Shown piece by piece: positions 176 through 57,169 of a stretch of 64,000 nt of DNA (position 1 is the stretch's first letter; each line of letters begins with the position of its first letter). The DNA lies in NCBI RefSeq assembly GCF_902713615.1, contig NC_052164.1, positions 77,475,830 to 77,539,829 of the forward strand, in the 5' to 3' direction. Below the pieces are notes generated by a model. It did not search any database. It saw only the letters and a list, made by a program, of their open reading frames with translations, and was not told where the DNA came from. The translations under genes were made by a program, and so were the position numbers. The stretch is from Scyliorhinus canicula (Eukaryota).

Positions 176-1798
176 AGGATCAGGGTGTCACTGGCTAGAC
201 CAGCATTTATTGCCCATCCCTAGTTGTCCTTCAAAAGGTGATGGTGAACTGTCTTCTTGAACCGCTGCAGTCCAGGTGATGTAGGTACTCCCACAGTGCT
301 GTTCGAGAGGAAATTCCAGGATTCTGACAAAGCGACAGTGAAGGAATGGTGATATATTTCCAAATTAGGATGTTGAATGGCTTGCAGGGAACCTCCAGGT
401 GGTGGTGTTCCCAGGTATCTGCTGCTCTTGTCCTTCTAGATGGCAGTGGTCATGGATTTGGCAGGTGCTATCTAAGGAACCTTATACATAATGCTCATCT
501 CTGTAAATAAACTCTCCCTGATACACACTTTCTATGGCTCCTTGTTCCGATGAGCATTGCTGTGAGTTCAACCTGAAAACTGGATTCCTGTACCAGAAAA
601 AGACAAGGTGCTCTGTCTAGGAGTTCCTCCATGTGCTTTGTGAAAGGTTTCCAGCATATTGGTGAGTTCCTTCACAACGATTGATCGTATCAATCATACC
701 TATTTTTTTGTAGGGAATGAGGATGTCTCCCACAGTATACAGGGCTGTTAACACTCAATCCAGTCATTAACCATGTGTGCTCTCTGCGCCTTTGTAGATG
801 CAGCTGCTCCCTCAACCCATCTGCCGCAGTCTCTGGTGACAGTAAACCTCAAGGATTCAGCTTATGAAGGATGAAGCTACTTATTGCAGATGGTCATTGC
901 CTGGCATTTGTGTGGTGCAAATGTTACTTACCACTTGTCACCTCAAGCCTGGATATTGTCCAGGCTTTGCAGCATTTGCACATGGACTCCTTCAGTGTCA
1001 GAGGAGTCACAAATGGTGCTGAACATTGTGAAATCATCAGCTGATATCCTCACATCTGGCCTTATGTTGGAAGAAACGTGAAAGATGGAGCAGCTGAAGG
1101 TGGTTGGGCCTACGACACTGTTCTGAGGAACTCCTGCAGTGTTGTCCTGGGTCTGAGATGACTGACCTCAAATCACCACAACCATTGTCCTTTGTGCTAG
1201 ATATGACTTCAACCAGTGGAGAGTTATGCCCGATTCCCATTGATTCCATTTTTGCTGCGGCTCCTTGATGCCATACAAGATCAAATGCTGCCTTGATGTC
1301 AAGGATAGTCACTCTCACCTCACCTCTGGAGTTCAGCTGTTTTGTCCATGTTTGAGCCAAGGCTGGAATGAGGTCAGGAGCTGCGTGGCCCTGGCGGAAT
1401 CCAAACCGAGCATCAATGAGCTGGTTATTGCTAAGTAAGTGCTGCTTAAATAGCACTGTTGATGATCCTGTCCATCACTTTACTGATGATTGAAAGTAGA
1501 ATGATAGGGCAGTAATTGGCAGGGTTGGATTTGCCCAGCTTTTTGTGTGCAGGACAAACCCGGACAATGTTACACATTGCCTGGTAGATGCCAGTATTGT
1601 AGCTGTACTGAAACAGCTTGGCTGGGGGCATGGCAAGTTCTAGAGCACATATCTTCAGTGCTATTGCCGGAATATTGTCAGGGCCTACAACCTTTGCCGT
1701 ATCCAGTGCCTTCAGCCATTTCTTGATATCATGTGGGGTAAATCGAAATGGCTGAAGACTGGCGTCTGTGATGTTGGGGACCTCTGGAGGATACCCCA
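176..1798 (-). mobile_element. Decayed CR1/L2-group LINE (RT region and 3' end, in pieces)
   Basis: Minus-strand ORFs contain LDTAKVVGPDNIP, NYCPIILLSIISKVMD, FGFRQGHAAPDL and LDIKAAFDLVWHQG (RT motifs). The 3'-end sequence at 176-480 recurs at 22697 and 46680. Confidence 0.8.
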
Positions 1799-1974
1799 AA
1801 TGAGATTCCTGATAGTGAATGGCGGGACACGCGGCCCGCCGCTAACTGGGCGGGGGGGGGATGTACACGGCAAGCTTTCATGCCGACATAAAATGTGACT
1901 TTGTCCTTCTTACGGTATCCCCTCACCACATTGCTGAACCCACCCGACTGGATAGGTGGGGTTGTTTTCTTTGG

Positions 1975-5473: not shown

Positions 5474-6454
5474 TGTTAGGATACAGTTGTCAAACCTTTG
5501 TCAGCTCTTATTGTCCTTTCTAATTCCTGTCCTGTCTGCTTTTCATCTCCAATCTTCTTGCTAGCTGCTGCAAACAAAAAACACCCCTAGTAATCGACTA
5601 GCCCAGGACTTCCATTTTAGGTTCTGTGGCAGAGCCTGTGATGTCAGTTTGATAGACTTGGCAAGCAGCCAATCGGTGAAATTGAAATTCTGAGCCATCT
5701 CCTGTTGCTGCTTGCGATTGGTGGAAACAATCAGAATCTTCCAGAAGATTCAGGTCATGTGAAGAGCTCATTTTTGTCTTTAGTCAAAGACCCAACGGAA
5801 TGTGGGTCATACAGACCCATATCTCTGCTGAACGCAGACGCCAAAATACTGGCCAAAATCCTAGCCAAAAGGCTAGAAGACTGTGTACCTGAGGTGGTCA
5901 CAGAGGACCAGACGGGCTTCGTCAAAGGTAGACAGCTTACCTCAAACATCAGGCGCCTGCTGAACGTGATAATGACCCCCTCCGGGGAGAGAACACAAGA
6001 GGTGATCGTCTCCCTGGACGCAGAAAAGGCCTTTGACAGAGTCGAATGGAAATACCTCATAGAGGTACTGGAGCGATTCGGGCTTGGAACAGGGTTCACC
6101 GCTTGGGTAAAGCTCCTATACAATGCCCCCATGGCGAGTGTACGGACCAACAATACCAACTCCCAATACTTCCAGCTGCACAGGGGCACCAGACACGGAT
6201 GCCCACTGTCCCCACTGCTGTTCGCACTAGCAATCGAACCGCTAGCAATCGCGCTCAGGGCAGCAAAAAATTGGAGGGGGATCCGAAGGGGAGGCAGAGA
6301 GCACAGAGTCTCAATCTATGCAGATGATCTGCTCCTCTACATCTCGGACCCACAAAGCAGCATGGACGGAATCATTGCGCTCCTGAAAGAGTTTGGAGCC
6401 TTCTCGGGCTACAAACTCAACATGAGCGAAAGCGAGATCTTCCCAGTACACCTG

Positions 6455-6502
<48 letters not shown>

Positions 6503-9190
6503 CACTAAAGGGGCTGCCGTTCAAACAAGCCCGACACAAATTCCGCTACCTGGGGATCCAATTAGCCCATGACTGGAAAGGGATCCACAAATGGAACCTC
6601 GGAGGAAGCAAAAAAGGACCTGCAAAGATGGAACACACTCCCACTCTCCCTCGCGGGGAGAGCCCAGACGATCAAAATGAACGTACTGCCCAGGTTCCTC
6701 TTCCTGTTTAGATCCATTCCGATCTACATCCCCAAGGCCTTTTTCAAAGTGCTGGACAAACTTATCATGGCGTTCGTATGGGGGGGGTAAAAATGCTAGG
6801 ATCCCAAAGAAGGTCCTACAAGGAACAAAATCCAGGGGGGGGCTAGCCCTCCCGAATCTACAACTCTACCACTGGGCGGCAACAACCGAGCGAGTAAGGG
6901 GATGGATCCAGGAGCCAGAAGCCGAGTGGGTGCGTGCGGAGGAGGCCTCCTGCATGGGGACCTCCCTCCGGGCCCTCGCCACGGCAGCACTTCCATCTCC
7001 ACCCAAAAAACACTCCAGCAGCCCAGTGGTGACAGCCACCCTCCAATCCTGGAACCAACTGCGGCAGCAATTTGGCCTGACCAAAATGTCGGACAAGGCT
7101 CCCATCTGCAACAACCATAGGTTCACACCAGCACTGACTGACGCCACCTTCAAAAGGTGGAGGCAGGACGGGGGGACACTGACAGTCAGGGACCTATACA
7201 CGGACGACAGGATCGCAACACTGGACGAACTGGGGGGGAACGAGCTACGGTACCTGCAGCTCAAGGGCTTCCTACGAGGGGAGACAGGGACGTACCCACG
7301 GCCGCCACGACGGACACTACTGGAAGACCTACTGGACGCAAGTATCCTAGAGAAAGGGAACTGTAGCGACATGTATGACCGACTGGTAGAAAGGGACGAC
7401 ACCGTACTGGACGCAACAAGAATGAAATGGGAGGACGACCTGGGGATTGAGATAGGGTGGGGACTCTGGAGCGAAGCACTGCATAGGGTCAACTCCACCT
7501 CCACGTGCGCAAGGCTCAGCCTGACGCAACTAAAAGTGGTACATAGAGCCCACTTAACGAGAAACCGTATGAGTAGGTTCTTCCCGGAGGTGGAGGACAG
7601 AGGTGCCAAAGAGGCCCGGCCAACCACGCCCACATGTTCTGGTCTTGCCCCAGACTTGTGGAGTACTGGACAGCCTTCTTCGAGGCTATGTCCAAAGTGG
7701 TAGGGGTGAGGGTGGAGCCATGCCCGAGAGTGGCGGTCTTCGGGGTTTCAGACCAGCCAGATCTATTCCTGGGGAGGGCGGACGCCCTTGCCTTTGCCTC
7801 CCTGATCGCCCGCCGTAGAATCCTGTTTGGCTGCCGGTCAGCAGCACCGCCCAGAGCTGCAGACTGGCTGTCCGACCTCTCGGAATCTCTCCAAATGGAG
7901 AAAATCAAATTCGCCATCCGAGGGTCAGACAACGGCTTCCACAGAACGTGGGAGCCATTCATGCAATTGTTCCGGGACCTGTTTGTGGCCAACGTACAAG
8001 GGGAAGAATAGCCGGGTGGCCAAGACTCGGGAAAGTGGACGGGAATCGGGGTAAGGTAGCGGGGGGGGGCTGCGGGTTCGTTATGGGGGTTTGATGGCTA
8101 GCTAAGGCCCAAAACCAAACTGTAAATAAATGCCTATAAACATGTGCCTCGGCCATATTGGGGAATGTAAAATATGTATGCCGGCTAAAGGGGGCGGCCA
8201 CAGTTGTTATTATGAAGATGCTTACCTGTAAATAGACATGTTAATTTTTGCGTTTTTTTTCTCTCTAAAATAATTTGTAATTTGTTGGATATAAAATATG
8301 AAAACTCAATAAAAAACATTTATTAAAAAAACATTTTTTGTCTTTAGTTCTGTGAGGACATTCAGCCAGGAAGCAACTAGAAGACACTCTATCTCTGCTC
8401 TCTCTCTCTGCCAGATGATTTTAAAAATTCAGAGTCAGACCTGTGAAGGTACTTCTGTTTAAAAGACAGACAGCAGTCAAAACTGTGAAGGAACCTTCTG
8501 GAGTAAAAGATTGCAAACAGTCCCTCACCAGTTCTCTAATAACATAACCTTCTGTTTGAATGGCTGGGATGAACTCAAACTGAGAACTCTCTTTAGAATA
8601 CAGCCAGTGTTTCTGCACATAAGTCAGGTGAACGGAAAACCATGTAAAATTTTCAGGAATACCTCAGGGAGACAAAGGCTCCATCTGGTGGTTGGGGGTC
8701 AGAGTTGCACCGACCTGGATCTCCTGTGTAAAGCTCCATCTTGTGGTCAAATATCGGAATCACACCAACCTGAATCACTTGTATAAATCAATTTCCCAGA
8801 GGGTTGCATTCGGAGAAGTCAGGCGCCTGCAGAGGCCACAACAACAGCAGCAAAGATTAATTTCAAACCTTTTCCTTCAATTCCCATTGTTTTAGTTCTT
8901 CCCCTCTCCGTGCCATGTGTCTGTCTTGTGCGTGTGTCAGAGTGGAGGGTGGGACGTGTTTTTGGGAATAGGTGGACTGGTAGACCATTGTTCCATTATT
9001 TCCTTTACTCTTGCCATAAATAAACAATGTGTTCATGTTTTATTTATAAATCTGGTGCCAGTAACTCATTGGAGCAGTCAGGGCTTAAAGGTCGCAGGAA
9101 AACACTAATTATTGGTGACTTCACTTATGTAGGGACCCTGGGATCTGTGGAGCTGGAACTGACCTCGCACTCGCCCAGGGTGTCATAACA
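5474..9190 (+). mobile_element. Solo LTR (about 1.15 kb) with 4-bp TSD, interrupted by an L1
   Basis: Begins TGTTAGG and ends CATAACA, flanked by CTGG at 5470-5473 and 9191-9194. AATAAA near 9017. Confidence 0.7.
5785..8331 (+). mobile_element. 5'-truncated L1-clade LINE (ORF2 RT and C-terminus, frameshifted)
   Basis: SYRPISLLNADAKIL, SLDAEKAFDRVEW, RGTRHGCPLSPLLF and IYADDLLLY motifs. A-rich tail with AATAAA. TSD CATTTTT(T)GTCTTTAGT at 5769-5784 and 8332-8348. Confidence 0.92.
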
Positions 9191-16829: not shown

Positions 16830-17420
16830 CAGAAGGGGGTCATTCATCCCATCAAGTCTGCGCTGACCCTCTGAAAGAGCATCTTTCCTAGGCCCACTCC
16901 GCCACCTATCCCCATAATTCCACCTTACCTGCACACCTTTAGACACTAAGGGGCAATTTATCATAGAATTATCATAGCATTTACAGTGCAGAAGGAGGCA
17001 ATTCGGCCCATCGAGTCTGCACTGGCTCTTGAAAAGAGCACACTACACAAGCCCGCACCTCCACCCTATTCCCGTAACCCAGTAACCCCACCCAACTCTA
17101 AGGGCAATTTTGGACACTAAGGGCAATTTAGTACTGCCAATCTACCTAACCTGCACACCTTTGGACTGTGGGAGGAAGCCAGAGCACCCGGAGGAAACCC
17201 ACGCAAAGAATGTGCAAACTCCACACAGTCACCCGAGGCTGGAACTGAATCCGGGTCTCTGGTGCTGCGAGACAGCAGAACCAAAAGCCAAGTTCCACTG
17301 TGTATCCTTCAATGAACATCACCAAAAATAGCCTTGGGTGACTGCCTGTAAGGAGTTTGCACCTTCCCCCCATGTCTGCATGGGTTTCTTCAGAGTGCTC
17401 TGGCTTCCTCCCACAGTCAC
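16830..17420. mobile_element. Cluster of V-SINE pieces (full minus-strand copy at about 16965-17280)
   Basis: Same core and tail as 2911-3255, in both orientations. Confidence 0.75.
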
Positions 17421-18129
17421 AAAAAATAGATTTTCTGGTCATTTTTACCTTGTTCACCACACTCAAAATAGTTGATGGAATATGAATTAGTCTGTGATGG
17501 CAGCACAAACAAAGCAGAAACATAATATCCAATGTTTTTACTGTCAATTAATCAGTATGGACCCAGATTACTGTATATTATTTGTCGACTGTTTTCATGG
17601 ATGCAGCTTCAGTTCTGTCCAAGCAATTAATGGTTTGCTAAAATTTAGATTTCTCTTCCACGCCACCTGAGTAATTACCTGTGCTTTTACATAAACTCCT
17701 TTCTCTGAGTTACAAAGCCAATCATCGAATCGTAGAACCCCTACAGTGCAGAAGGAGGCCATTCAGCCCATCGAGTCTGCACCAGCCCTCTGAAAGAGCA
17801 CCCTAAGTAGGCCCAGTCCCCTGCCCTCTGCCTGTAACCACTGTGCCATTATGCCGCCTAATGTGCAGAGCGGACAGGGAAAGTGCTTAGTCCGTATCTT
17901 TGCTGGCTCCAAAGGCTAAGTCAAATTCAAATTCCATTACCTGTCAATAGCAAGCAAAAGCTTAACTGATCAGCTCAAACCTCTGAACTGAGATCACGCC
18001 GCAAAATAGCCTTTTAAATAAATCTGAGTTTCTGTTTCAATTCCCCTTGAGTGTTCTTTTCATTTTTGTGAACCTGCTATGACTCTGGTAGCAACATACC
18101 TGCTACCTGAATCAGTCTTTTCTTTAAAT

Positions 18130-18789: not shown

Positions 18790-21700
18790 ATATTTTTATT
18801 CTCCTTTTTGACGTTTTCTCCTGAATTTACACCCACCAACAATTAACAATAATCAGCAACAGATATGTCAATCCCCATAACAATAACAACAATCCCATCC
18901 TCCCACCAACCCCCAAACATCAGCCCGCAATGTTTACATAAACAAATGACAAAAAGGAATCAGGAATCACCCATAGTCGCCATTAACACATACAGTCCCC
19001 CTCCCCCCAACCCTCCCAACCACCCCTTCCCCAACTAATGTTCGATGTTATCCAGTTCTTAAAAGTGCATAATAAATAAATAATGCCCATGACTTGTAGG
19101 ACCCTTCCGTCCTTCCCCTCAGTTCAAACTTAACTTTCTCAAGGGTCAAGAATTCCAACAGGTTCCCCCCACCACGCCAAGGCACAGTGTGGAGAGGCTG
19201 CTCTCCATCCCAGCAGGATCCGCCTTCAGGGGATCAACGAGGTGAAGGCTACGATATCTGCCTCTGCACCTGTTTCCAACCCTGGCTGGTCCGACACCCC
19301 GAATATGGCCTCCAGGGGACCCGGGTCCAGTTCCACGTGCACCACCTTGGAAATTACCCTAAAAACCTCCTTCCAGTAATCCTCTAGCTTTGGACAGGAG
19401 CAAAACATATGAAAGTGATCCCCCCACCCCCCCACCCCTCCGCAACTCGCACACACATCTTCTACTCCTTCAAAGAATCGGCTCATCCTCGCCATCGGGA
19501 GGTGTACTCTGTATACCACCTTCAGCTGTATCAGCCCCAACCTCGCACATGAGGTGGAGGCATTGACTCTCCGGTGCACCTCACACCAGACCACCTCCTC
19601 TATAACCTCTCCCAACTCTTCCTCCCACTTTGCTTTGATCCCTTCCAGTGGTGCCTTATCCTCGTCCAAAATAGCTCCATACACCGCTGACACTACCCCC
19701 TTCTCCAGTCCCCTTGTCGTCAGCACCTCCTCCAGCAATGTGGAGGCCGGTTCCTCCAGGAAGCTCTGATCTCCTTCCTGGCAAAATCTCGAACCTGCAT
19801 GTATCTAAACATTTCTCCCTGCTCCAGCCAATACTTCGCTTCCAGCTCCTTCAATCCTGCAAACCGACCCCTAAGAAACAAATCTTTTGGCGTCTTAATC
19901 CCCTTCTCTTCCCATTTCCAAAATCTTCCATCCCACTTCCCTGGCTCAAATCTGTGGTTCCCCCGAATCGGCATTTCCCTTGACCCTGCCCCCAACCCGA
20001 AGTGTTGGCGAAACTGCCTCCAGATTTTCAATGAAGCTACTATTACCAGACTCCTTGAGTATTTCCCCGTAGCTATCGGGAGCGGCGCTGTTGCTAGTGC
20101 TTTCAGTCCCGATCCCCTGCACAAACTCTCCTCCATTCTGACCCACTGGGAATCAACCCCTCTGACCCAGCTCCGCACCTTCTTCAAATTCGCCACCCAG
20201 TAGTAGTACATCAGGTTCGGGAGACCCAAACCCCCTGCCTGCCTTCCCCTCTGTAGCAGCACCTTTCACACTCTGGCCACCTTCCCTCCCCATATGAACA
20301 AGGAAATCCTTCCTCAATCTCCCTGAAAAAAGCCTTTGGCAGGAAAGGCATTGAAAAATAAACAGAAATCGCGGCCACACATTTTAGCTGCCTGTACCCG
20401 ACCCGCCAGTGACAGAGGGAGACCATCCCACCTTGCCAGATCGGCTTTCAATCTCCCCACCAAACTAGTGATGTTGTGCCTGCAAAGCCTCCCCCACTCC
20501 CGGGCCACCTGCACCCCCAGATACCTAAAGTGAGTCGCTACCCTACAGAATGGTAGCCCCCCCCCACCCCGGCCGAGACACCACAAAATATTCACTCTTG
20601 TCCAGTTTCAGCTTGTACCCCAAGAAAGACCCGAGAAATACTCGCGGTAGCCCCAATATTCCTCCTATTGACGTACTTGATTCCGACACATACAGCAGCA
20701 AGTTGTCGGGATATAAGGCCACCCTATGCTCTATCCCTCCCTGCACTATTCCTTTCCATGCTCCCGAACTTCTTAATGCGATGGCCAACGGTTCAATCGC
20801 AAGTGCTAACAACAGGGGGGACATAGGACATCCCTGCCTCGTCCCACGGTGGAGAGAAAAGTATCTCGAGCTGATATTGTTTGTGCAGACACTCGCCTTC
20901 GGCTCCTTGTATAATAGCTTTACCCAGTTCACAAATCTTGGTCCAATCCCAAACCGCTCCAGAACTGCCATCAGGTACCCCCATTCTACCCGGTCAAACG
21001 CCTTCTCAGCGTCCAATACCACAACCACCTCTGTTTCCTTCCCTTCCGCCGGTGCCATAATGACGTTCAAAACCCTCCTAATGTTCGAAAACAGCTGCCT
21101 CCCTTTCATGGACCCTGTCTGATCCTCACCTATCACCTTCGGGAGGCACTCCTCCAGCCTACCCGCCAGTACCTTCACCAATACTTTTGCGTCCACATTC
21201 AGAAGTGATATGGGCCTATACGACCCACACTCCATTGGATCCTTATCTTTTTTTAGCAACAGCGAAATCGATGTCTGCCCCAAGGTTTGTGGCAGCACCC
21301 CGTTCTCTATCGCCTCTTCAAACATCCCCACCATCAGGGGTGCTAACTTATCCTTGAATTTTTTATAATATTCCACAGGAAACCCATCCGGCCCTGCCAC
21401 CTTCCCTGACTGCATCCTCCCAATCCCATCCTTTATCTCCTGCTCCACCATTGCTCCTTTTAATATAGCCCTGTCTCCCTCCCCTAGCCTCGGGTCCTCC
21501 AACCCATCTAGAAATTCTTTCATCTCACAGTCTCCCCTGGGTGGCTCTGATCTGTACAACCTCTCATAAAACTCCTCAAAAACCTTGTTAATCCGCTCCG
21601 GAGCCACCACCAACATCTCTGCCCTATCCCTTACCTGAAGAATTTCCTTGCAGCTGCCTCCGTCCGGAGCTGACCTGCTAACATACCTCATCTCCATGTT

Positions 21701-22258
21701 CAAAAACTGCACCCCTTGTTCGTCTCAGTTGGTGCACCGCCTTCCTGGTGGACAGTCGGTCGAAGCTCGCCTGTCGTTCCTTCCTCTTTTCCAGCTTCGC
21801 TGTGTCCCCATCTTCTGTATAACTCCTATCTACCTCCAATATCTCATCTCTTACCCTCTGCCGCTCCAACCTCTCCTCTTTGTCCATCCTGGCCTTAAAC
21901 AAAATTACCTCACCCCTCACCACCACCTTTAGAGCCTCCTAGACAACTGCCTTCGACACCTCACCCATATATTTGAAACCTACATATTCCTTAATTGCCT
22001 TTTCAATTTTCTCACAGAACACTTGGTTCCCCCAAAAGCCCCACATCCAGCTTCATCCCTGGCCTCAGCGCTACCCCCTTCTCCAGTACCATATCCACCC
22101 ACTGCGGAGCGTGATCTGACACTGCAATTGCCAAGTATTCCGACTCCTTAACTCCAGCCAGCAAAGTCTTTCCCACCACAAAAAAGTCGATCCGCGAGTA
22201 TACCTTATGGACTGCTGAGAAAAACGAGTGCCCCTGTTCCCTTTCACACTCCTGTCCT
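18790..22258 (-). mobile_element. 5'-truncated L1-clade LINE (EN end, RT, C-terminus; frameshifted)
   Basis: HKVYSRIDFF and SDHAP (endonuclease), GPDGFPVEYYK, LDAEKAFDRVEW and RGTRQGCPMSPLL (RT), with a 3' UTR and A-tail at the low-coordinate end. Confidence 0.92.
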
Positions 22259-37255: not shown

Positions 37256-37563
37256 AAAACATAGTTAATTACATATATGTTTTGCTCAAAATATGTGGTT
37301 TCTGTGGTAAACGCCTTTAATGTTTCCATCACGCCATGGGTCAATTTGATGACTTGCTTGGTCAAAAAAAAACAGGTTTCCTTTCGAATCTCACCAAGTT
37401 TAGATAATGAAAGCAATTGGGTCTGTTTAAATACCATGGCTTGTCCCTTTCGCAGGAGTTGAATAATAGAGAAGATGACCTTATGTACAAACTAGGCACG
37501 AAAGCAGGATTTTAGCTCAATAAAGCACAATATCTGAAGGGAATGAACATTAAACCAGGAAGT

Positions 37564-37612
37564 ATGTTGGTGCAACTGAGTCTACTCCTACTTACAGGGT
37601 CAAGTGTAGCAG
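37564..37612 (+). CDS. Exon 1 (signal peptide) of an IgSF receptor gene
   Basis: ATG TTG GTG CAA CTG AGT CTA CTC CTA CTT ACA GGG TCA AGT GTA GCA G|GTACGT encodes MLVQLSLLLLTGSSVA, a hydrophobic leader ending at a phase-1 GT donor. It splices in frame to the V exon. A second in-frame ATG lies at 37543. Confidence 0.8.
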
Positions 37613-38567
37613 GTACGTGAACTGATTTAAGTCATGCAATATTGAATGCAAGAATTGAATTTACTTGCTCCAGAATTATGTCTGGTATTGTAGCTGGCTG
37701 TTACCCAGTGCAAGAATATTCTCAAGTATTTGAAGGATTGATCAGCAACAGTGATCCGAACCAACACCATCCAAATAAAATTTGTGCTGTTAAAATAATT
37801 TGAATATACATTAATACAGAAATGCCCTTAATTGGTTACTATTTCACTAAATACAGCGATCGAACATTCTTTCGGTAAATACTGATTGTCCTAAACCTAT
37901 GCAAGGAGTATTTCAGTATCTGTTGATTGAGAGGATTAAATACTGGTGTTTGGAGTGTTTTTGTACAACAGTACATGTGTGCTGCTATAGCAGGTTATTA
38001 TTCACCAAACACAATTTGTTATTACAATGTTATCATTTGTTTTATTATTGCGTAAATGCTGCGAGATTGAGATAACGTTCTGTGTTTAACATTCGGGTAA
38101 TCCTCTGTTATGGGTCAATGCATCTGTTGGGCTGGTAATGGATTTTATTCCAACATGTGTCCCAGTCACTGGATGGTGAAACATTTACTCGCACATTGCC
38201 TCTCTCTTCCTCTATACAACATAAACTACTTCAGAGCAACCCAATATGTCAAGAAGATTACTTTTCCTATATTAATGATTCTACCTTTTACAACTAACAC
38301 AAGGCACTGTAAACAAGAATATTTTATCACAATCGGATAAGTAAGTGCAAGTCAATAAACCAGGGGATTACCATTATTTTAGTATTGTGAAATCCATCAA
38401 ATGTGTTTGATGCTTTCGAAGCAATTTACTTTGTCGCCTGATTACTTTCTGGCTTTGGAGAAAAATTGGAACTGGGTGAATGTTACACAGTTATAATTTC
38501 ACAATAAATAGGAAATATTCTTCATTATTTGTAGATCAGTCCGACTGAATTTAAGATTACATTCAAC

Positions 38568-38790
38568 AGGGCAGCACGGTGGCGCAGTGGTTAGCCCTGC
38601 TGCCTCACAGCGCCGAGGTCCCAGGTCTGATCCCGGCTCTGGGTCACTGCCCGTGTGGAGTTTGCACAGCCTCCCCGTGTCTGCGTGGGTTTCATGCCCA
38701 CAACCCAAAGATGTGCAGGGTAGGTGGATTGGCCACGCTAAGTTGCCCCTCAATTGGAAAAAATTAATTGGGTACTCTAAATTTTGAAAA
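38568..38790 (+). mobile_element. V-SINE in intron 1
   Basis: GGGCAGCACGGTGGCGCAGTGGTTAGC head plus the SINE core. Confidence 0.85.
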
Positions 38791-39392
38791 GGAAAAGAAA
38801 AGATTACATTCAACAATTGAAACATTTTATCCCATGAGGTAATCAGGTAACTGGGAGGTGACTCTTAGGTCTAGTCAGCATCTGGTGAAGAACGTCACTT
38901 ACATTATTGATCTATCCACTTAATTACAGTGCAAATCACAGTGATTGGATCCATACAGTGTGAGACATGAGCTTTGGAAGAATGATTGACCGTATCGATA
39001 AAGGGTGGGAGCTTACCTGCATCCCTAATATTGCTTGGGGTGATTTTAGCCACTCTGCTCTCTTATTGAATATGGAAGATTGAAATGTTTCATTTGTTGA
39101 ATATTATTCAAAGTAGTCACTGCTACTTCATTGAACGAGAAGCAAAGATCTCCCTTAGAATATTGTGGTGGTATTCTAATCACTAAACAGTAGTTTATAT
39201 GGAACAAAATAAATTCAACACTGTGAGAAACTATTAATGCAGAATATCAGGTCTCAAACCCTCACATAGTTTAGTAATCAGGCTTAAAAAGATTTTTCAC
39301 ATTCCAGGTTGCTTCAATTGAGTTTTTGTTGTTAATTATTTATGACCGACTGACCTCAAAATTAAAATGACAAATCTTTTTTATTCCATCAG

Positions 39393-39737
39393 GTGTCCGA
39401 ATCATCGGTGAAGTGAGTCAGCCGCACCTGGTCAGTGTGCTGAGAGGAGAGTCAGTCACAATAAACTGTACATTCATTTATCATGGGACTGATGTTGACT
39501 GGATCCATATAAACTGGTACAGGATCACTCCGGGATCCAACTATTCTTTTGAAGTAAACAAACCAACCTGTATTCCTGATGTTTCTCTGGGTGGTTTGAC
39601 CCACTGTGTTGTTTCACTGAAAATTGAAAATGTTTCTTTTGAACAGTCTGATTCTAATTATATCTGCATGGCGAGGATGCCACTTATCTACCCGCCAATA
39701 GTGAGAAGAGGACAAGGAACACGGATACAGATTTATG
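39393..39737 (+). CDS. Exon 2: V-set Ig domain with germline-joined J-like segment (NKp30/CD28-family-like)
   Basis: Acceptor tttttattccatcAG|GT and donor TATG|GTAAAG give a 345-nt exon, phase 1 at both ends. Translation GVRIIGEVSQPHLVSVLRGESVTINCTF...INWYR...VSLKIENVSFEQSDSNYICMARMPLIYPPIVRRGQGTRIQIY shows the B-strand Cys, C-strand Trp, YxC and a GxGT G-strand. Confidence 0.92.
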
Positions 39738-42329
39738 GTAAAGTATTTGCATGTATGATTACAGTTAGATAAACAGTGATATGTATAATTTACATACACA
39801 CACACACATAATATAAATATATCTCAGGTTTAGTGTAATGTACACTCGCAGGACCAAGTTGTAGGACATGTTGTGCTTTATCCAGCAGGATGACCCTGAC
39901 TCTATAAATCGCTGCTTGGACGCCAGCTTCTGGGGGACACTGAGCCACTGGATATTTCTGTTATGAGGGGATGGGTGCCATCATCCACTTTCTCAACAAA
40001 ACAGAATTGAAATGCTGCATTTGAGACTTTGAGTGCATTCTAGTATCCGTGCTGGGCCCAGCATGGATTGGAACGAGCCGGTTAGATCGCAGGAGAGGCC
40101 AAAACCAGGAACCTCGCCTGACGCCAAACGGTTTGCAATCTACGTTGGTCACTCCTGTTTGTGGATTCAGGATCCCACCTAGATATGGTGAGAAACCAAT
40201 AATCAGCAATTAAGGGCAATCGCCATCTCATTAACAAGACGCTCGCCCTATCTAAAGGCCTCCTGGGATCTGACCGGCTATCCTGCGGGACTTCATGCCA
40301 CCATCGATTAGTAGACCTATTTAAAAACGGGAACCTAGCGCAATGGCTGCTGAGGGAACGGAGGAGATGAGCAGCCTTCCTCAGCATCGGACACGCAGCC
40401 CAGGGACACTGGAGCTGCCGCCCCAGTGCTCGGGGAAAGGGTTGTGGAGCCCCTAAAGGGGGAAGGGTCTGGTCTGGAAGGGTGGAATCAGTCAGGCGTT
40501 ACTCTGTGGGCAGGGACCCAGCACTTGTGAGCCTAACTCCGAATATGTGTGTACTCATCACAGGGGCAGATGTTTCTCAGTCCCATCGCGCACATCCAGG
40601 AGAGAGCCTTGTTCCTGGATTTAATCGGGAGGTCACTGGAAGTCCCTCTGACTATGAGCGGCCTCTGGTCGTGCAGCTCATTCTAATACTGAGAAGGAGT
40701 TGGCATTGTTAGGTACGCGAGCACTTTGCAGCTCTTAAGCGCATTCTCAGGGGTACACCTGCCATTTTTCAGACAATGATTACTGCATCGCATTCCAAAC
40801 TGTGAGGTCTGAATACTTTGCCTAAACCCTGGAGGCTTCAACACCATACAGGCAGCAACCAACGCACAGCCTGGGGCACAGTACTGGGAAACACCCCACA
40901 AAAGGAGGGTGAGGTGTGCATGGGGGTGGGGGGGGGGGGGGGGGGGGGGGGGGGCAGATGGCAACAGGGGAAGATGGTGCATCCTGGTCCGCTGTGTGGA
41001 ATAATGTGACAGGTTTCTCATGCACAAGGTATTTTAATAGTGTACAATCGAAAGCCCCATTGTCCCTAACTACCGATGGTGTCCCCTTCCGGCCCAGTGC
41101 CCACTCAGTTATCCCGAACTTCCTTAGCCCTCTGCACTCTGCAGTTACATCAAGGTGTGAGCGCAGGATGCACATCTGAAGTGGAGGCAGTCAGTTTCTC
41201 TTCGAGCCATGTATGGCTTTGATGATTTTGGCGGATGTTCTCTGGAGGGCCTGGAACCAAAGGTGCCCGGCCGACTTACCAGTGGCTCTTGCCTCGCCTG
41301 TGCCACCCTGCTCTTCCCCCTGCCCATGTGAAATGCATGGGAGAGTTGGAAATGCCTGTTATCTCCGTGGTGGGAGGCACCAGCTCGGGCTCCAGCACTT
41401 CCTCCTACCGGATGGTGTCCATGGGGTCCTGAGGATTTCCATGGGACAGAATGGCAGCTGGAGTGGGCTCCATAGGCATCTGTGCAATCTGCTCTGCCGG
41501 CCCTAACACCTCCTCATTGTCTGCACCATGGTGTCGATGCCTTCAGTGATGTCGCTCAGTGACTGGGCCATGCTCTGCGGTGCCCTGCCAATATCCACCT
41601 GCACCTGGGACACGTTCATCAGCGACTGGGACATGATGTCGAGGCCCTCAGCCATGGCCGCCACTGACTGAGTCTTGCCTTGGAAACCACCACTCATGGT
41701 TCAGGCGTTGTGCTGCAGGCTTTCCACTGTAGACGTCACCCCAGCAGTGTTGGCCTCAGGGCCACGCATTACGGTGCCATCTCCTGCACCCCTAGCCTTT
41801 CGGACTCCCCAGTCAGCTATGGACCCACAGGATTTTCACTGACATCCCCCTCTGAATCTCATGGCTGCACCCTCATAGCGACAGCATCAATTCCAGGATG
41901 GTCTGGCCCAAAGTCTCGACATCTGACTGGGACTCAGCTGAATCCTGGGATCCAGCACTCCTCCCTTTGGATCCTTTGGATGTTCCTGCTTCCAGCTGAT
42001 GTGCATCAGCAACTGTGTGGTGCTCACCAGATTGTGCCTCAGAAGCCTATCCACGACTGTGGTCCCGCCGAGGTGTGTCTCTGCGCTGGTGGAAGGTCGA
42101 TGCGATAGCTATAGCTGTGATGCATTGATGGTGTTCTCTTCAGAACTTTCCTGCAAGGTGTTCTCGTGGGTGGCAGGGCAGGGGGCCCAGTCCCATCAGG
42201 TGGAGTTCCTGCGGGAGGGAGAGTGATCATGTCACCCTCAGTGAGACGGAAGGGTCATTGTTCCCTGACATGTACCACTCACTTGAGACAGGACATCTGA
42301 ATGGGGGGGGGCAGTGGATCCTCACCTCT

Positions 42330-49347: not shown

Positions 49348-49650
49348 GACCCCCTGAAATCTCCACTGTTACTGGTGCTTTGGTAGCTGGACGTAAGTGC
49401 CACCTGATCTGCTCCACCAAGGGGTTGTACTCTGAGAATATCTTCTTTACCTGGACATGCCATGGAACAAACAGCTTCACAAACATCACAACATCAACCT
49501 CAAAGAGAACAGTGAATGGCACATCTGTCACTAGCTGCCAGCTTGAGATCATCCTCAAAACAGCTGACCATGGAACTGTCTGTACATGTCAGATAAACCA
49601 TGTAACTTTCAGACAGCCAGTGACAACTGAGATCAAACTACATGTTTTGT
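49348..49650 (+). CDS. Exon 3: C1-type Ig domain
   Basis: Acceptor tttctaatctctcAG|GA and donor TTGT|GTGAGT give a 303-nt exon, phase 1/1. GPPEISTVTGALVAGRKCHLICSTKGLYSENIFFTW...DHGTVCTCQINHVTFRQPVTTEIKLHVL matches C1-set patterns CxxxGxY..I..TW and CxxxHxxxxxP. Confidence 0.88.
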
Positions 49651-51944: not shown

Positions 51945-52259
51945 ATGGACCACAAGATCCCATAATAATGTACAAGATTAGTAACAGTGGAAGTTACCAT
52001 TCAGGGACAAGTAGCCTCATCACTGTCCCAATGGACTCATTCCTGGAACTGAGATGCTCCGTGGATAGTAATCCAGTCTCTTCTGTGATCTGGATGAAGG
52101 AGAATGAAAAGTACACTGAAATGTCACAGATCACAGCTGGATTAAATAGTTCAAAAGTAAAGATGACAAATTTCCAATCTGAAGATGAAGGAATCTACTG
52201 GTGCCTGGTGAACAATAGCTACGGCTGGAGAAAAGCAAGTGTAAAGGTTGAAAGTGAAG
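51945..52259 (+). CDS. Exon 4: C2/I-type Ig domain
   Basis: Acceptor ttttactgttAG|AT and donor GAAG|GTAAAT give a 315-nt exon, phase 1/1. YGPQDP...LELRCSVDSNPVSSVIWMK...FQSEDEGIYWCLVNNSYG shows the CxxDSNP, W and DEGxYxC motifs. Confidence 0.9.
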
Positions 52260-54168: not shown

Positions 54169-54266
54169 GTGATACATGGCTTTGGATTTTTATTGTGCGA
54201 TCCATTTCAGTTGCTGCATTCATTTTGATTCTAGTCACATTGAGCTACTTGTTAACTGCTGAATAA
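54169..54266 (+). CDS. Exon 5: transmembrane exon with charged Arg and stop codon
   Basis: Acceptor tttcttatAG|GT gives GDTWLWIFIVRSISVAAFILILVTLSYLLTAE* (TAA at 54264-54266), followed by CAG|GTAATG. The five exons total 1110 nt, i.e. 369 aa plus stop, with no frameshift. Confidence 0.85.
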
Positions 54267-55919: not shown

Positions 55920-56272
55920 AATTATCATAGAATTTACAGTGTAGAAGGAGGCCATTCGGCCCATCGAATCTGCACCGGCTCTTGTAAAGAGCACCCTACC
56001 CAAGGTCAACACCTCCACCCTATCCCCATAACCCAGTAACCCCACCCAACACCAAGGGCAATTTTGGACGCTAAGGGCAATTTATCATGGCCAATCCACC
56101 TAACCTGCACATCTTTGGACTGTGAGAGGAAACCGGAGCACCCGGAGGAAACCCACGCACACACGGGGAGGATGTGCAGACTCTGCACAGACAGTGACCC
56201 AAGCCGGAATCGAACCTGGGACCCTGAAGCTGTGAAGCGGTTGTGCTATCCACAATGCTACCGTCCTGCCCC
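55920..56272 (-). mobile_element. V-SINE, full length
   Basis: Colinear with 2911-3255, including the ATCATAGAATTTACAGTG tail. Confidence 0.85.
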
Positions 56273-57169
56273 ATGGAAAGTGAACAATCTATATCCTGAC
56301 ACAGTGATGCAAGAAATGTCAATGATGCTGAAGATGTTGGCCTGAGGACATTTCCCTGAGGAACCGCTGCAGTGAAATACTGAAGCTGTACTTATTGTCT
56401 GACGATAAATAACACCACATTCCTTATGGAGAGGATGGTTAACTCGTGGTTGGTATTTTAAAGAGGAAATGAGATGATCAATGCCAGCTGGTTTGGGGAC
56501 TACGATAAGTGAGCAAACACTCAGTTGTTTTGAAAATAAAGGAACTAGGTATTGCTTTTGCCATTTGTGAGTGGGAAACTAATGTGTGGGGAGAGAAAAT
56601 AAGTAAGGACACATGGGAGATGGCTGATGATGGTAATCATGAATCTAAAGCCAGTTTAGTTGTTGGCGCTGATGGTTTTCAGTGGTCTGTGGTAAATAGT
56701 TTCCACCAGAAACATCCAGCAGACCATTCAGAATGCCACAAAAACTTTTAAAAAATCATGCTCAACAACCAATTTTCTGTTTAGCGTCTATCACATCGAC
56801 AAATTTACATATCTTCATCTATTGAGAATTAAAGTATATGAGTGTGGGACCTGCAAGCACATATTTAAAGAAACAAAAATCAATGTAAATGTGACAACAA
56901 GACATTGGTTCCCAGATAAATGAGCCTGTGTTTAGTAGGTGTTTTATCTATCATGAAGATTGCGTTCGATGGTGTCAGTCAAGTATTCTTGTCTGGTTAC
57001 TGTTTTCCACCCCGATTTTTTGACTGTGGTTTTTGGATTTACCAAGCGCCTGGTCTGAATAATTAAAACAGACCTCACTGCCTCTCTGAAACTTTAAAAA
57101 AATGTGTTTTCTTTCATGTGAATCTGAGATAATTAAATACATTTATTTATCTTTAATGCAAAAATATGA

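Follow-up and report, generated by a model that had tools for sequence, protein, structure and literature searches.

The exon at 39393-39737 of a 64,000-nucleotide stretch of the genome of the catshark Scyliorhinus canicula (contig NC_052164.1; the whole stretch is referred to here as the window) probably encodes the V domain that stands farthest from the membrane and binds the ligand in the activating-type member of a paired-receptor family, with a proline-bearing FG loop as the contact, a C59-C71 disulfide as a staple and a membrane arginine for an adaptor. In such a receptor, the arginine of the anchor would recruit an ITAM adaptor, and the tips of the V domains of the activating and inhibitory forms would bind the same ligand or similar ones. 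The contact surface would be the FG loop, stiffened by its prolines and carrying, four residues ahead of the GxG bulge, the motif P-x-x-[Y/F]-P-P, and the C59-C71 disulfide would staple a compact hairpin in place of the usual C''-D-E arrangement. The evidence comprises the gene model and its transcripts, conservation among elasmobranch relatives, two predicted structures and the organisation of a three-gene cluster.

The V exon and its gene

The V exon lies on the forward strand between an acceptor AG at 39391-39392 and a donor GT at 39738, with phase 1 at both ends, and translation of 39395-39736 yields a V-set domain of 114 residues in which the V and J-like parts form one uninterrupted reading frame. 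Pfam assigns this domain to the V-set family (E 7.5e-6), as a generic call alone, and the canonical C25, W41 and C91 are all present. The F-G segment reads YICMARMPLIYPPIVRRGQGTRIQIY. The only heptamer-like sequence in the exon, CACTGTG at 39602, sits inside the codons of His70 and Cys71 and has no accompanying nonamer, and the exon is accordingly considered free of an RSS; a rearranging reading was dropped for want of a heptamer-nonamer pair. The next exon encodes a C1-set domain (E 2.2e-6), so that V and J-like strand in one RSS-free exon are followed directly by C1, the arrangement of a non-rearranging VJ-C1 gene. An earlier note on this DNA had described a VSQP start, the F-G sequence, a J-like strand, an extra cysteine pair and a single exon without RSS, and each of these is found where that note had placed it.

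The complete gene is modelled as five exons on the same strand with phase-1 introns throughout (Table 1). Their predicted join gives an open coding sequence for a 369-residue protein with the order leader, V, C1, I-set, Arg-bearing anchor and three-residue tail. The exon-3 domain also matches the Pfam CD80-like C2-set family (7e-4), and among solved structures the C1 domain of an orthologue matches UrIg2 C3 (E 1e-7) and IgM C-mu. The I-set domain bears a CxxDSNP signature and, in the comparison of family orthologues, matches MAG and Siglec-8. The same Arg-bearing anchor occurs in short forms from Heptranchias and Pristiophorus. No stalk cysteine lies between the V-C1-I-set ectodomain and the anchor of the window gene, and both a CD28-type tail tyrosine motif and an anchor YxxxxT are absent; the tail reads TAE, and the anchor has SYLLT (Y+3).

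Table 1. Positions in the window of the receptor exons, of the main features of the V domain and of an exon relic
Feature	Position	Strand	Evidence
Exon 1: start codon and most of the leader (MLVQLSLLLLTGSSVA plus 1 nt), phase-1 donor	37564..37612	+	Reading; contig support
Intron 1: decayed V-exon relic with two in-frame stops	38919..39098	+	tblastn to P0002 residues 32-89, E 5e-6; translation
Exon 2: V-set domain with germline-joined J-like G strand	39393..39737	+	Reading; Pfam; contig ends; AlphaFold2 model
A-strand VSQP, residues 7-10	39413..39424	+	Translation; Q9 invariant, P10 at least 90%, 7-8 variable
Extra cysteine C59 (KPTC)	39569..39571	+	Invariant in 20/20 elasmobranch V domains; in model strand 58-62
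Extra cysteine C71 (THC), start of strand E	39605..39607	+	Invariant in all family members
FG loop P96-L-I-Y-P-P101	39680..39697	+	Outside the strands in both models, F being 88-95 and G 102-105
J-like G-Q-G-T, beta-bulge of strand G	39710..39721	+	G106 and G108 invariant; T109 in 19/20
Exon 3: C1-set domain	49348..49650	+	Pfam C1-set 2.2e-6; tblastn to orthologues, 61-70% identity
Exon 4: I-set domain	51945..52259	+	Pfam I-set 5.2e-11; tblastn to orthologues
Exon 5: membrane anchor WLWIFIVRSISVAAFILILVTLSYLL with Arg, tail TAE, stop	54169..54266	+	Reading

Transcription was assessed with contigs from public RNA runs aligned to 37300-41300. One contig, covering 37475-37614 without differences, ends at the leader donor, its 11 further letters mapping elsewhere. 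Another begins at 39391, with 191 upstream letters that map elsewhere, and two end at 39737/8 with 126-184 further letters elsewhere, one of them without differences. No read depth was found in the intron bins of this region that flank the V exon. Because the contigs break at the exon ends and the adjoining intron bins are empty, the V exon is transcribed and is spliced at the predicted exon ends. A pseudogene is ruled out by the open frame, the canonical splice sites and the spliced contigs.

Several other features of the locus deserve mention. The C1 domain of the window gene contains two cysteines (GRKC-HLIC and VTSC-QLEI) at which the inhibitory neighbour described below and the orthologues checked have S, T or N; since they lie on strands B and E, which are adjacent in the C1-set sheet, they may form an extra disulfide specific to this copy. 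Further extra cysteines, W(T/A)C and VCxC, are conserved in the C1 domain across the family. The decayed V exon in intron 1 lies about 300 bp upstream of the functional one and, with its DWIHTV, TCIPN and GDFSH elements, resembles the subfamily of gene B (see below). The Hemiscyllium orthologue has two intact V domains in tandem, and together the catshark relic and this tandem show that duplication of the V exon recurs in the family.

The introns of the receptor gene consist largely of transposon debris. An interspersed repeat occupies 38506-38907, where the summed depth is very high in each of the four RNA runs (up to about 900,000) and the contigs have many internal joints. Its minus-strand open reading frame (motif LAWPIHLPCTSLGCG..ETHA.TGR.CKLHT) recurs at 17146-17547 (-), at 56064-56345 (+) and in locus L002, and the repeat is probably an abundant transcribed element derived from a SINE or LINE. 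Long reverse-transcriptase-like reading frames, fragments of LINEs, are found at 5705-6508 (+), 20543-21712 (-) and 1037-1799 (-), and such fragments fill much of the window.

Distribution and conservation of the family

Six strong matches (E 1e-29 to 1e-41), followed by a gap to 1e-13, came from a profile search carried out exhaustively on 1.84 billion representatives. A word-indexed protein search with the full-length protein P0052 recovered 16 proteins, and the same search with the V region of P0003 only two. By the profile and this second search, the family is present in 17 elasmobranch species, which include the sharks Scyliorhinus (two species), Mustelus, Carcharodon, Cetorhinus, Rhincodon, Stegostoma, Chiloscyllium, Hemiscyllium, Heterodontus, Heptranchias and Pristiophorus and the rays Rhinoraja, Leucoraja, Narcine and Mobula. 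More distant relatives with the V-C1-I-set order occur in the coelacanth and in bonefish, a basal teleost. The names that these proteins carry in NCBI and UniRef are automatic only ("Siglec 5/8/11/12/13/14", "MAG-like", "sialoadhesin-like" and "uncharacterized"), and a literature search of incomplete coverage on paired receptors, Siglecs and SIRPs in cartilaginous fish found no published description of the family.

Conservation was measured on an alignment of 20 elasmobranch V domains from the 17 species, with a mean column identity of 66%. Fourteen columns are invariant, and these include C59, C71, P100, P101, G106 and G108; six out of 14 is, judged from the alignment, beyond chance. P96 is retained in 19 of the 20 domains, as is T109. 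The proline pair always stands four residues before GxG, and the residue that precedes it, position 99, is Y in 14 domains, F in two, N in two, K in one and S in one, and never P. Asparagine is found in the sister species S. torazame and in Cetorhinus, lysine in Carcharodon and serine in the activating form of Heptranchias; with N, K or S in four of the 20 domains, the aromatic residue is not essential everywhere. Positions 97-98 are variable. Thus, where the earlier note had looked to orthologues for conservation of LIYPP and of the cysteine pair, the string as a whole varies, and its two prolines and both cysteines are constant throughout (20/20). The VSQP start, which had been likened to that of NKp30, does not bear out that likeness: the family conserves only its Q-P, as light chains do.

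Beyond the elasmobranchs, the extra cysteine pair extends to the coelacanth and teleost relatives, and the proline pair is kept in the coelacanth (VPP) and absent in the teleost relatives. The entropy of the FG loop (1.01) is lower than that of the whole domain (1.28), strand C' being the most variable element (2.41). Since the putative contact loop varies less than the domain does on average, a conserved host molecule seems a more likely ligand than a variable foreign one.

Predicted structure of the V domain

AlphaFold2 models were obtained for the catshark domain (pLDDT 88.1) and for its orthologue from the electric ray Narcine (pLDDT 87.2). In both, the six residues of P-x-x-Y-P-P lie outside the strands, in the loop that joins F to G, and the placement of the proline motif in the FG loop, on which the earlier note had depended, holds in each. 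The G strand is interrupted at GxG (106-108).

Neither model has a separate D strand of the light-chain (IgL) type. The first extra cysteine lies instead on a short strand (58-62; 57-60 in Narcine), which leads through a turn into a long E strand that opens with the second, and the strand register of the models sets C59 opposite C71 (C58 opposite C70 in Narcine). A second disulfide between C59 and C71 is therefore predicted from the models. In textbook VL geometry, a light-chain-type alignment would put the two cysteines at opposite ends of the D-E hairpin; because it would separate them in this way, a restructured and stapled hairpin appears the more coherent reading. Compared with lambda light chains, the V domain lacks about three residues, which belong to C'/C''. 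The suggestion that the cysteines staple a shortened C'-D-E region is thus upheld by the models as regards the pairing, which the hairpin register favours, and needs correction as regards the shortening, which falls in C'/C'' and not in D-E. In sum, the structural half of the first reading of this DNA, with prolines in the FG loop and paired cysteines, is supported by the models.

An activating and inhibitory pair in a three-gene cluster

Three such V exons occur in the 4.22 Gb catshark genome, clustered in some 110 kb of a single 106.7-Mb contig, and tblastn over 289 kb resolved the cluster into three genes. Gene B lies upstream on the minus strand (-45936 to -35880 on the scale of the window) and has V, C1 and I-set exons; its V domain is 48-49% identical, and it represents a second subfamily. 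The RefSeq protein for this gene (XP_038635083, "siglec 11") is partial, omitting a C1 exon that tblastn locates at -39348..-38998. The third gene, referred to here as the inhibitory neighbour, lies 32 kb downstream of the window gene and spans about 54 kb (71901-125436 on the same scale). Its V, C1 and I-set exons are followed by an uncharged anchor and by tail exons in which the ITIM-like motifs SYADIVI and SEYSxx occur, and its V domain is identical to that of the S. canicula RefSeq entry "sialic acid-binding Ig-like lectin 13 isoform X2". The two ITIM-type tail exons are situated about 40 kb past the anchor exon. The window gene and its neighbour are therefore linked genes of which one combines an Arg anchor with the tail TAE and the other an uncharged anchor with an ITIM-like tail, as in other paired activating and inhibitory Ig-like receptors.

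The similarity between the two genes falls steeply from one end to the other. Their V domains share 90% of amino acids and 95.6% of nucleotides (dS 0.047, dN 0.045), their C1 domains 80% of amino acids (dS 0.156) and their I-set domains 50% (dS 0.585), and the anchors are unrelated (30%). For its I-set and anchor, the window gene shows 65% and 57% identity to the Arg-anchored short forms of Heptranchias and Pristiophorus, as against 50% and 30% to the neighbour, and activating and inhibitory forms both exist in distant sharks. By this greater closeness to distant short forms, the split into activating and inhibitory forms is old, and the V end has been homogenised in the catshark lineage. The V and C1 exons have been kept alike in the catshark pair and the I-set and anchor exons are old and form-specific, and the rise in dS from 0.05 in V to 0.59 in the I-set indicates gene conversion or a chimeric 5' end. 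A homogenised ligand-binding end together with an old split is the usual signature of paired receptors.

The dN/dS ratio of the V pair is about 1, a value that derives from 15 differences only and is hence little informative. Three of the 11 V replacements between the pair flank the FG loop (M92V, R94K and V103E), and E103, otherwise common, is lost in the activating copy alone. These changes would fit a tuned difference in affinity between the members of the pair, and are not proof of it.

Relationships to known receptors

In sequence searches with either the single domain or the family profile, the best 60 matches were antibody V domains, mostly of light chains (with one TCR-alpha V domain for the profile), and CTLA-4, CD28 and NKp30 were absent from these 60. 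The same three were absent from the best 30-50 fold matches listed by Foldseek on the PDB, by VIA-align and for the AlphaFold Swiss-Prot set. The best Foldseek match was a lambda-6 VL, and the best AlphaFold Swiss-Prot folds were Ig kappa, IGSF6, TCR-gamma and NFAM1; VIA-align placed TCR V domains (Z 11.9), PD-1 (11.4) and SIRP-alpha (11.2) in a tie. IgH V domains were also among the top folds. Because the top V-type matches are all tied (Z 10.8-11.9), the fold searches neither support nor exclude CTLA-4, NKp30 or SIRP.

CTLA-4 binds B7 proteins through its MYPPP loop, and NKp30 starts with VSQP and binds B7-H6; from these likenesses the earlier note had derived a B7-family ligand. The domain would then be a CD28/CTLA-4-like or NKp30-like module whose YPP loop engages that ligand, a reading that must be considered quite unlikely. 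The Arg anchor and minimal tail do recall NKp30, and clusters of CTLA-4 rank 16th and 21st among the language-model look-alikes, with the most shared features, which is a lead only. The spacing of four residues between the proline pair and GxG also agrees with the CD28X signature YxCx6PPPx4/5GxG, from which the family motif departs only in having an additional residue ahead of the prolines and Y for the first P (PMC11599192). A paddlefish "CD28-like" protein, picked up by the family profile (E 9e-5), has CTLA-4, as its first match, CD28 and NKp30 as its own best solved relatives, and its VPPPITSRGNGT falls on VYPPLERKGQGT in the MAFFT alignment as well as in that of hhalign. The hhalign comparison with the family (97.9%, E 4.5e-13) sets PPP-x4-GxG on YPP-x4-GxG with a score of 74, against 68 for a Xenopus VJ domain, 60 for a mudskipper VJ domain and 37 for a gar kappa V without J; the margin over unrelated VJ domains is small, however, and owes much to the FG-G segment. 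Also opposed to a CD28-like origin are the three-domain ectodomain without stalk cysteine or YxxM-type tail, the missing third proline, the aromatic residue lost in four of 20 orthologues and the absence of CTLA-4, CD28 and NKp30 from the best sequence and fold matches listed, which are of IgL and TCR type. The predicted extra disulfide is likewise away from the CTLA-4 positions: the extra cysteines of CTLA-4 are 17 residues apart, with the second about ten residues before strand E, and those of the catshark are 11 apart, with the second abutting E. Moreover, hhalign puts the extra cysteine pair of the mudskipper domain (Periophthalmus, residues 150-262, possibly NITR-like) on C59/C71. The pair is for this reason not peculiar to a CD28-like lineage, and the extra disulfide may be an older feature common to several non-rearranging VJ receptor lineages. 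The finding itself is narrower than the B7 proposal: the features are real and conserved, and what speaks for a B7-family ligand is the resemblance of a motif. It is improbable to much the same degree that the V domain shares a specific ancestry with the CD28/CTLA-4 family, carried on an antigen-receptor-like V-C1 stem in paired forms and with a B7-family ligand; if true, such an ancestry would connect the receptors of costimulation with paired innate receptors and with the non-rearranging forerunners of antigen receptors.

Three further identities bear on the ectodomain as a whole. A SIRP-like VJ-C1 paired receptor would read a broadly expressed "self" marker comparable to CD47, with the inhibitory form restraining myeloid or NK-like cells and the activating form countering decoys. 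The tail motifs of SIRP-alpha are xTYADL and SEYASV, which xSYADIVI and SEYSVV in the inhibitory neighbour resemble; the N-terminal VJ followed by C1, the charged-anchor activating twin whose V is nearly identical, and the presence of SIRP-alpha V among the tied fold matches (Z 11.2) agree with such a receptor as well. The third domain, however, is I-set and not C1, SIRP is not among the sequence matches listed, and SIRP V domains are not known to have the extra cysteine pair or the PP loop; a SIRP-like system is unlikely here. The order V, C1-like and C2/I, together with the CD80-like C2-set match of the second domain (7e-4), would also suit a nectin/PVR/TIGIT-type domain, in which the aromatic-proline element of the FG loop is the "key" of a lock-and-key contact between V domains. 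The FG motif of the PVR family is T(F/Y)P, with which the alternation of Y and F before the prolines compares well, but this (I/V)(Y/F)P-like element was the only nectin/PVR motif found: a reading of the 20-domain alignment showed neither (V/I)(S/T)Q on strand C nor AX6G in C'-C''. With no nectin or PVR among the best matches listed either, and no GxGT strand known in the PVR family, a domain of this type is very unlikely. A true Siglec, binding sialic acid through its V-set domain, is hardly credible, for all that the database names say Siglec, MAG-like or sialoadhesin-like, that the I-set domain has the CxxDSNP signature with matches to MAG and Siglec-8, and that the inhibitory tail bears an ITIM and an ITIM-like motif. 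The hallmarks of a Siglec V domain are an intrasheet B-E disulfide and an essential arginine on strand F. The present domain retains the canonical B-F cysteines and core tryptophan (C25, C91 and W41) and has no conserved F-strand arginine, position 94 being K in 14, R in two, Q in two, N in one and V in one; on these grounds a Siglec identity was set aside. A GxGT J-like strand and a C1-set second domain are likewise not known in Siglecs, and the Pfam call is V-set in general. The automatic Siglec names are thus not borne out by the V domain.

Significance and comparison with known systems

Germline-joined VJ genes with C1 domains are the class from which the rearranging antigen receptors are thought to derive (PMC12227049). 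To this class the present family adds a VJ-C1-I-set architecture in activating and inhibitory pairs, kept across sharks and rays, which the databases file under misleading Siglec or MAG names. The conserved proline FG loop and the predicted, family-specific second disulfide offer handles for ligand hunting and mutagenesis.

UrIg and UrIg2 are non-rearranging antigen-receptor-like genes of elasmobranchs (PMC12227049). They share with the catshark gene a single-exon VJ, part of the leader on the V exon and a C1-set domain next (PMC12227049), and the family C1 matches UrIg2 C3 as noted above (E 1e-7). UrIg has three C1 domains and is secreted and UrIg2 has nine or more, whereas the present family has one C1 and one I-set domain and paired anchors.

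The CD28/CTLA-4 receptors resemble the family in their VJ-type V domain, a proline-rich FG loop, GxG after four or five residues and a second intradomain disulfide, which in the family is predicted. Their FG (CDR3) loop bears P-[P/L]-P ahead of GxG (PMC11599192). They have a single V domain on a stalk with an interchain cysteine and signal through a YxxM/YVKM tail; the catshark receptors have three Ig domains, no stalk cysteine and no third proline, and are of the Arg-anchor or ITIM signalling type. NKp30 (NCR3) likewise has a germline VJ-type domain, an arginine in its membrane anchor and a very short tail, but it consists of one domain in place of three and lacks both the PP motif and the extra cysteine pair. 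Siglecs have the I-set/C2 domain signature and ITIM-type tails in common with the family, which differs from them in its canonical disulfide, J-like strand and C1 second domain.

In overall design, our comparison puts the family nearest to SIRP-alpha and SIRP-beta, with VJ-C1, an activating twin and ITIM motifs of the types YADx and SEYxxV in common. In both systems a non-rearranging VJ is followed by C1, a form with ITIMs is accompanied by one with a charged anchor and minimal tail, and the V domains of the pair are near-identical. The third domain differs, being C1 in SIRPs, where the anchor residue is lysine, and I-set in the catshark receptors, where it is arginine and where the V domain bears the extra cysteine pair and the PP loop.
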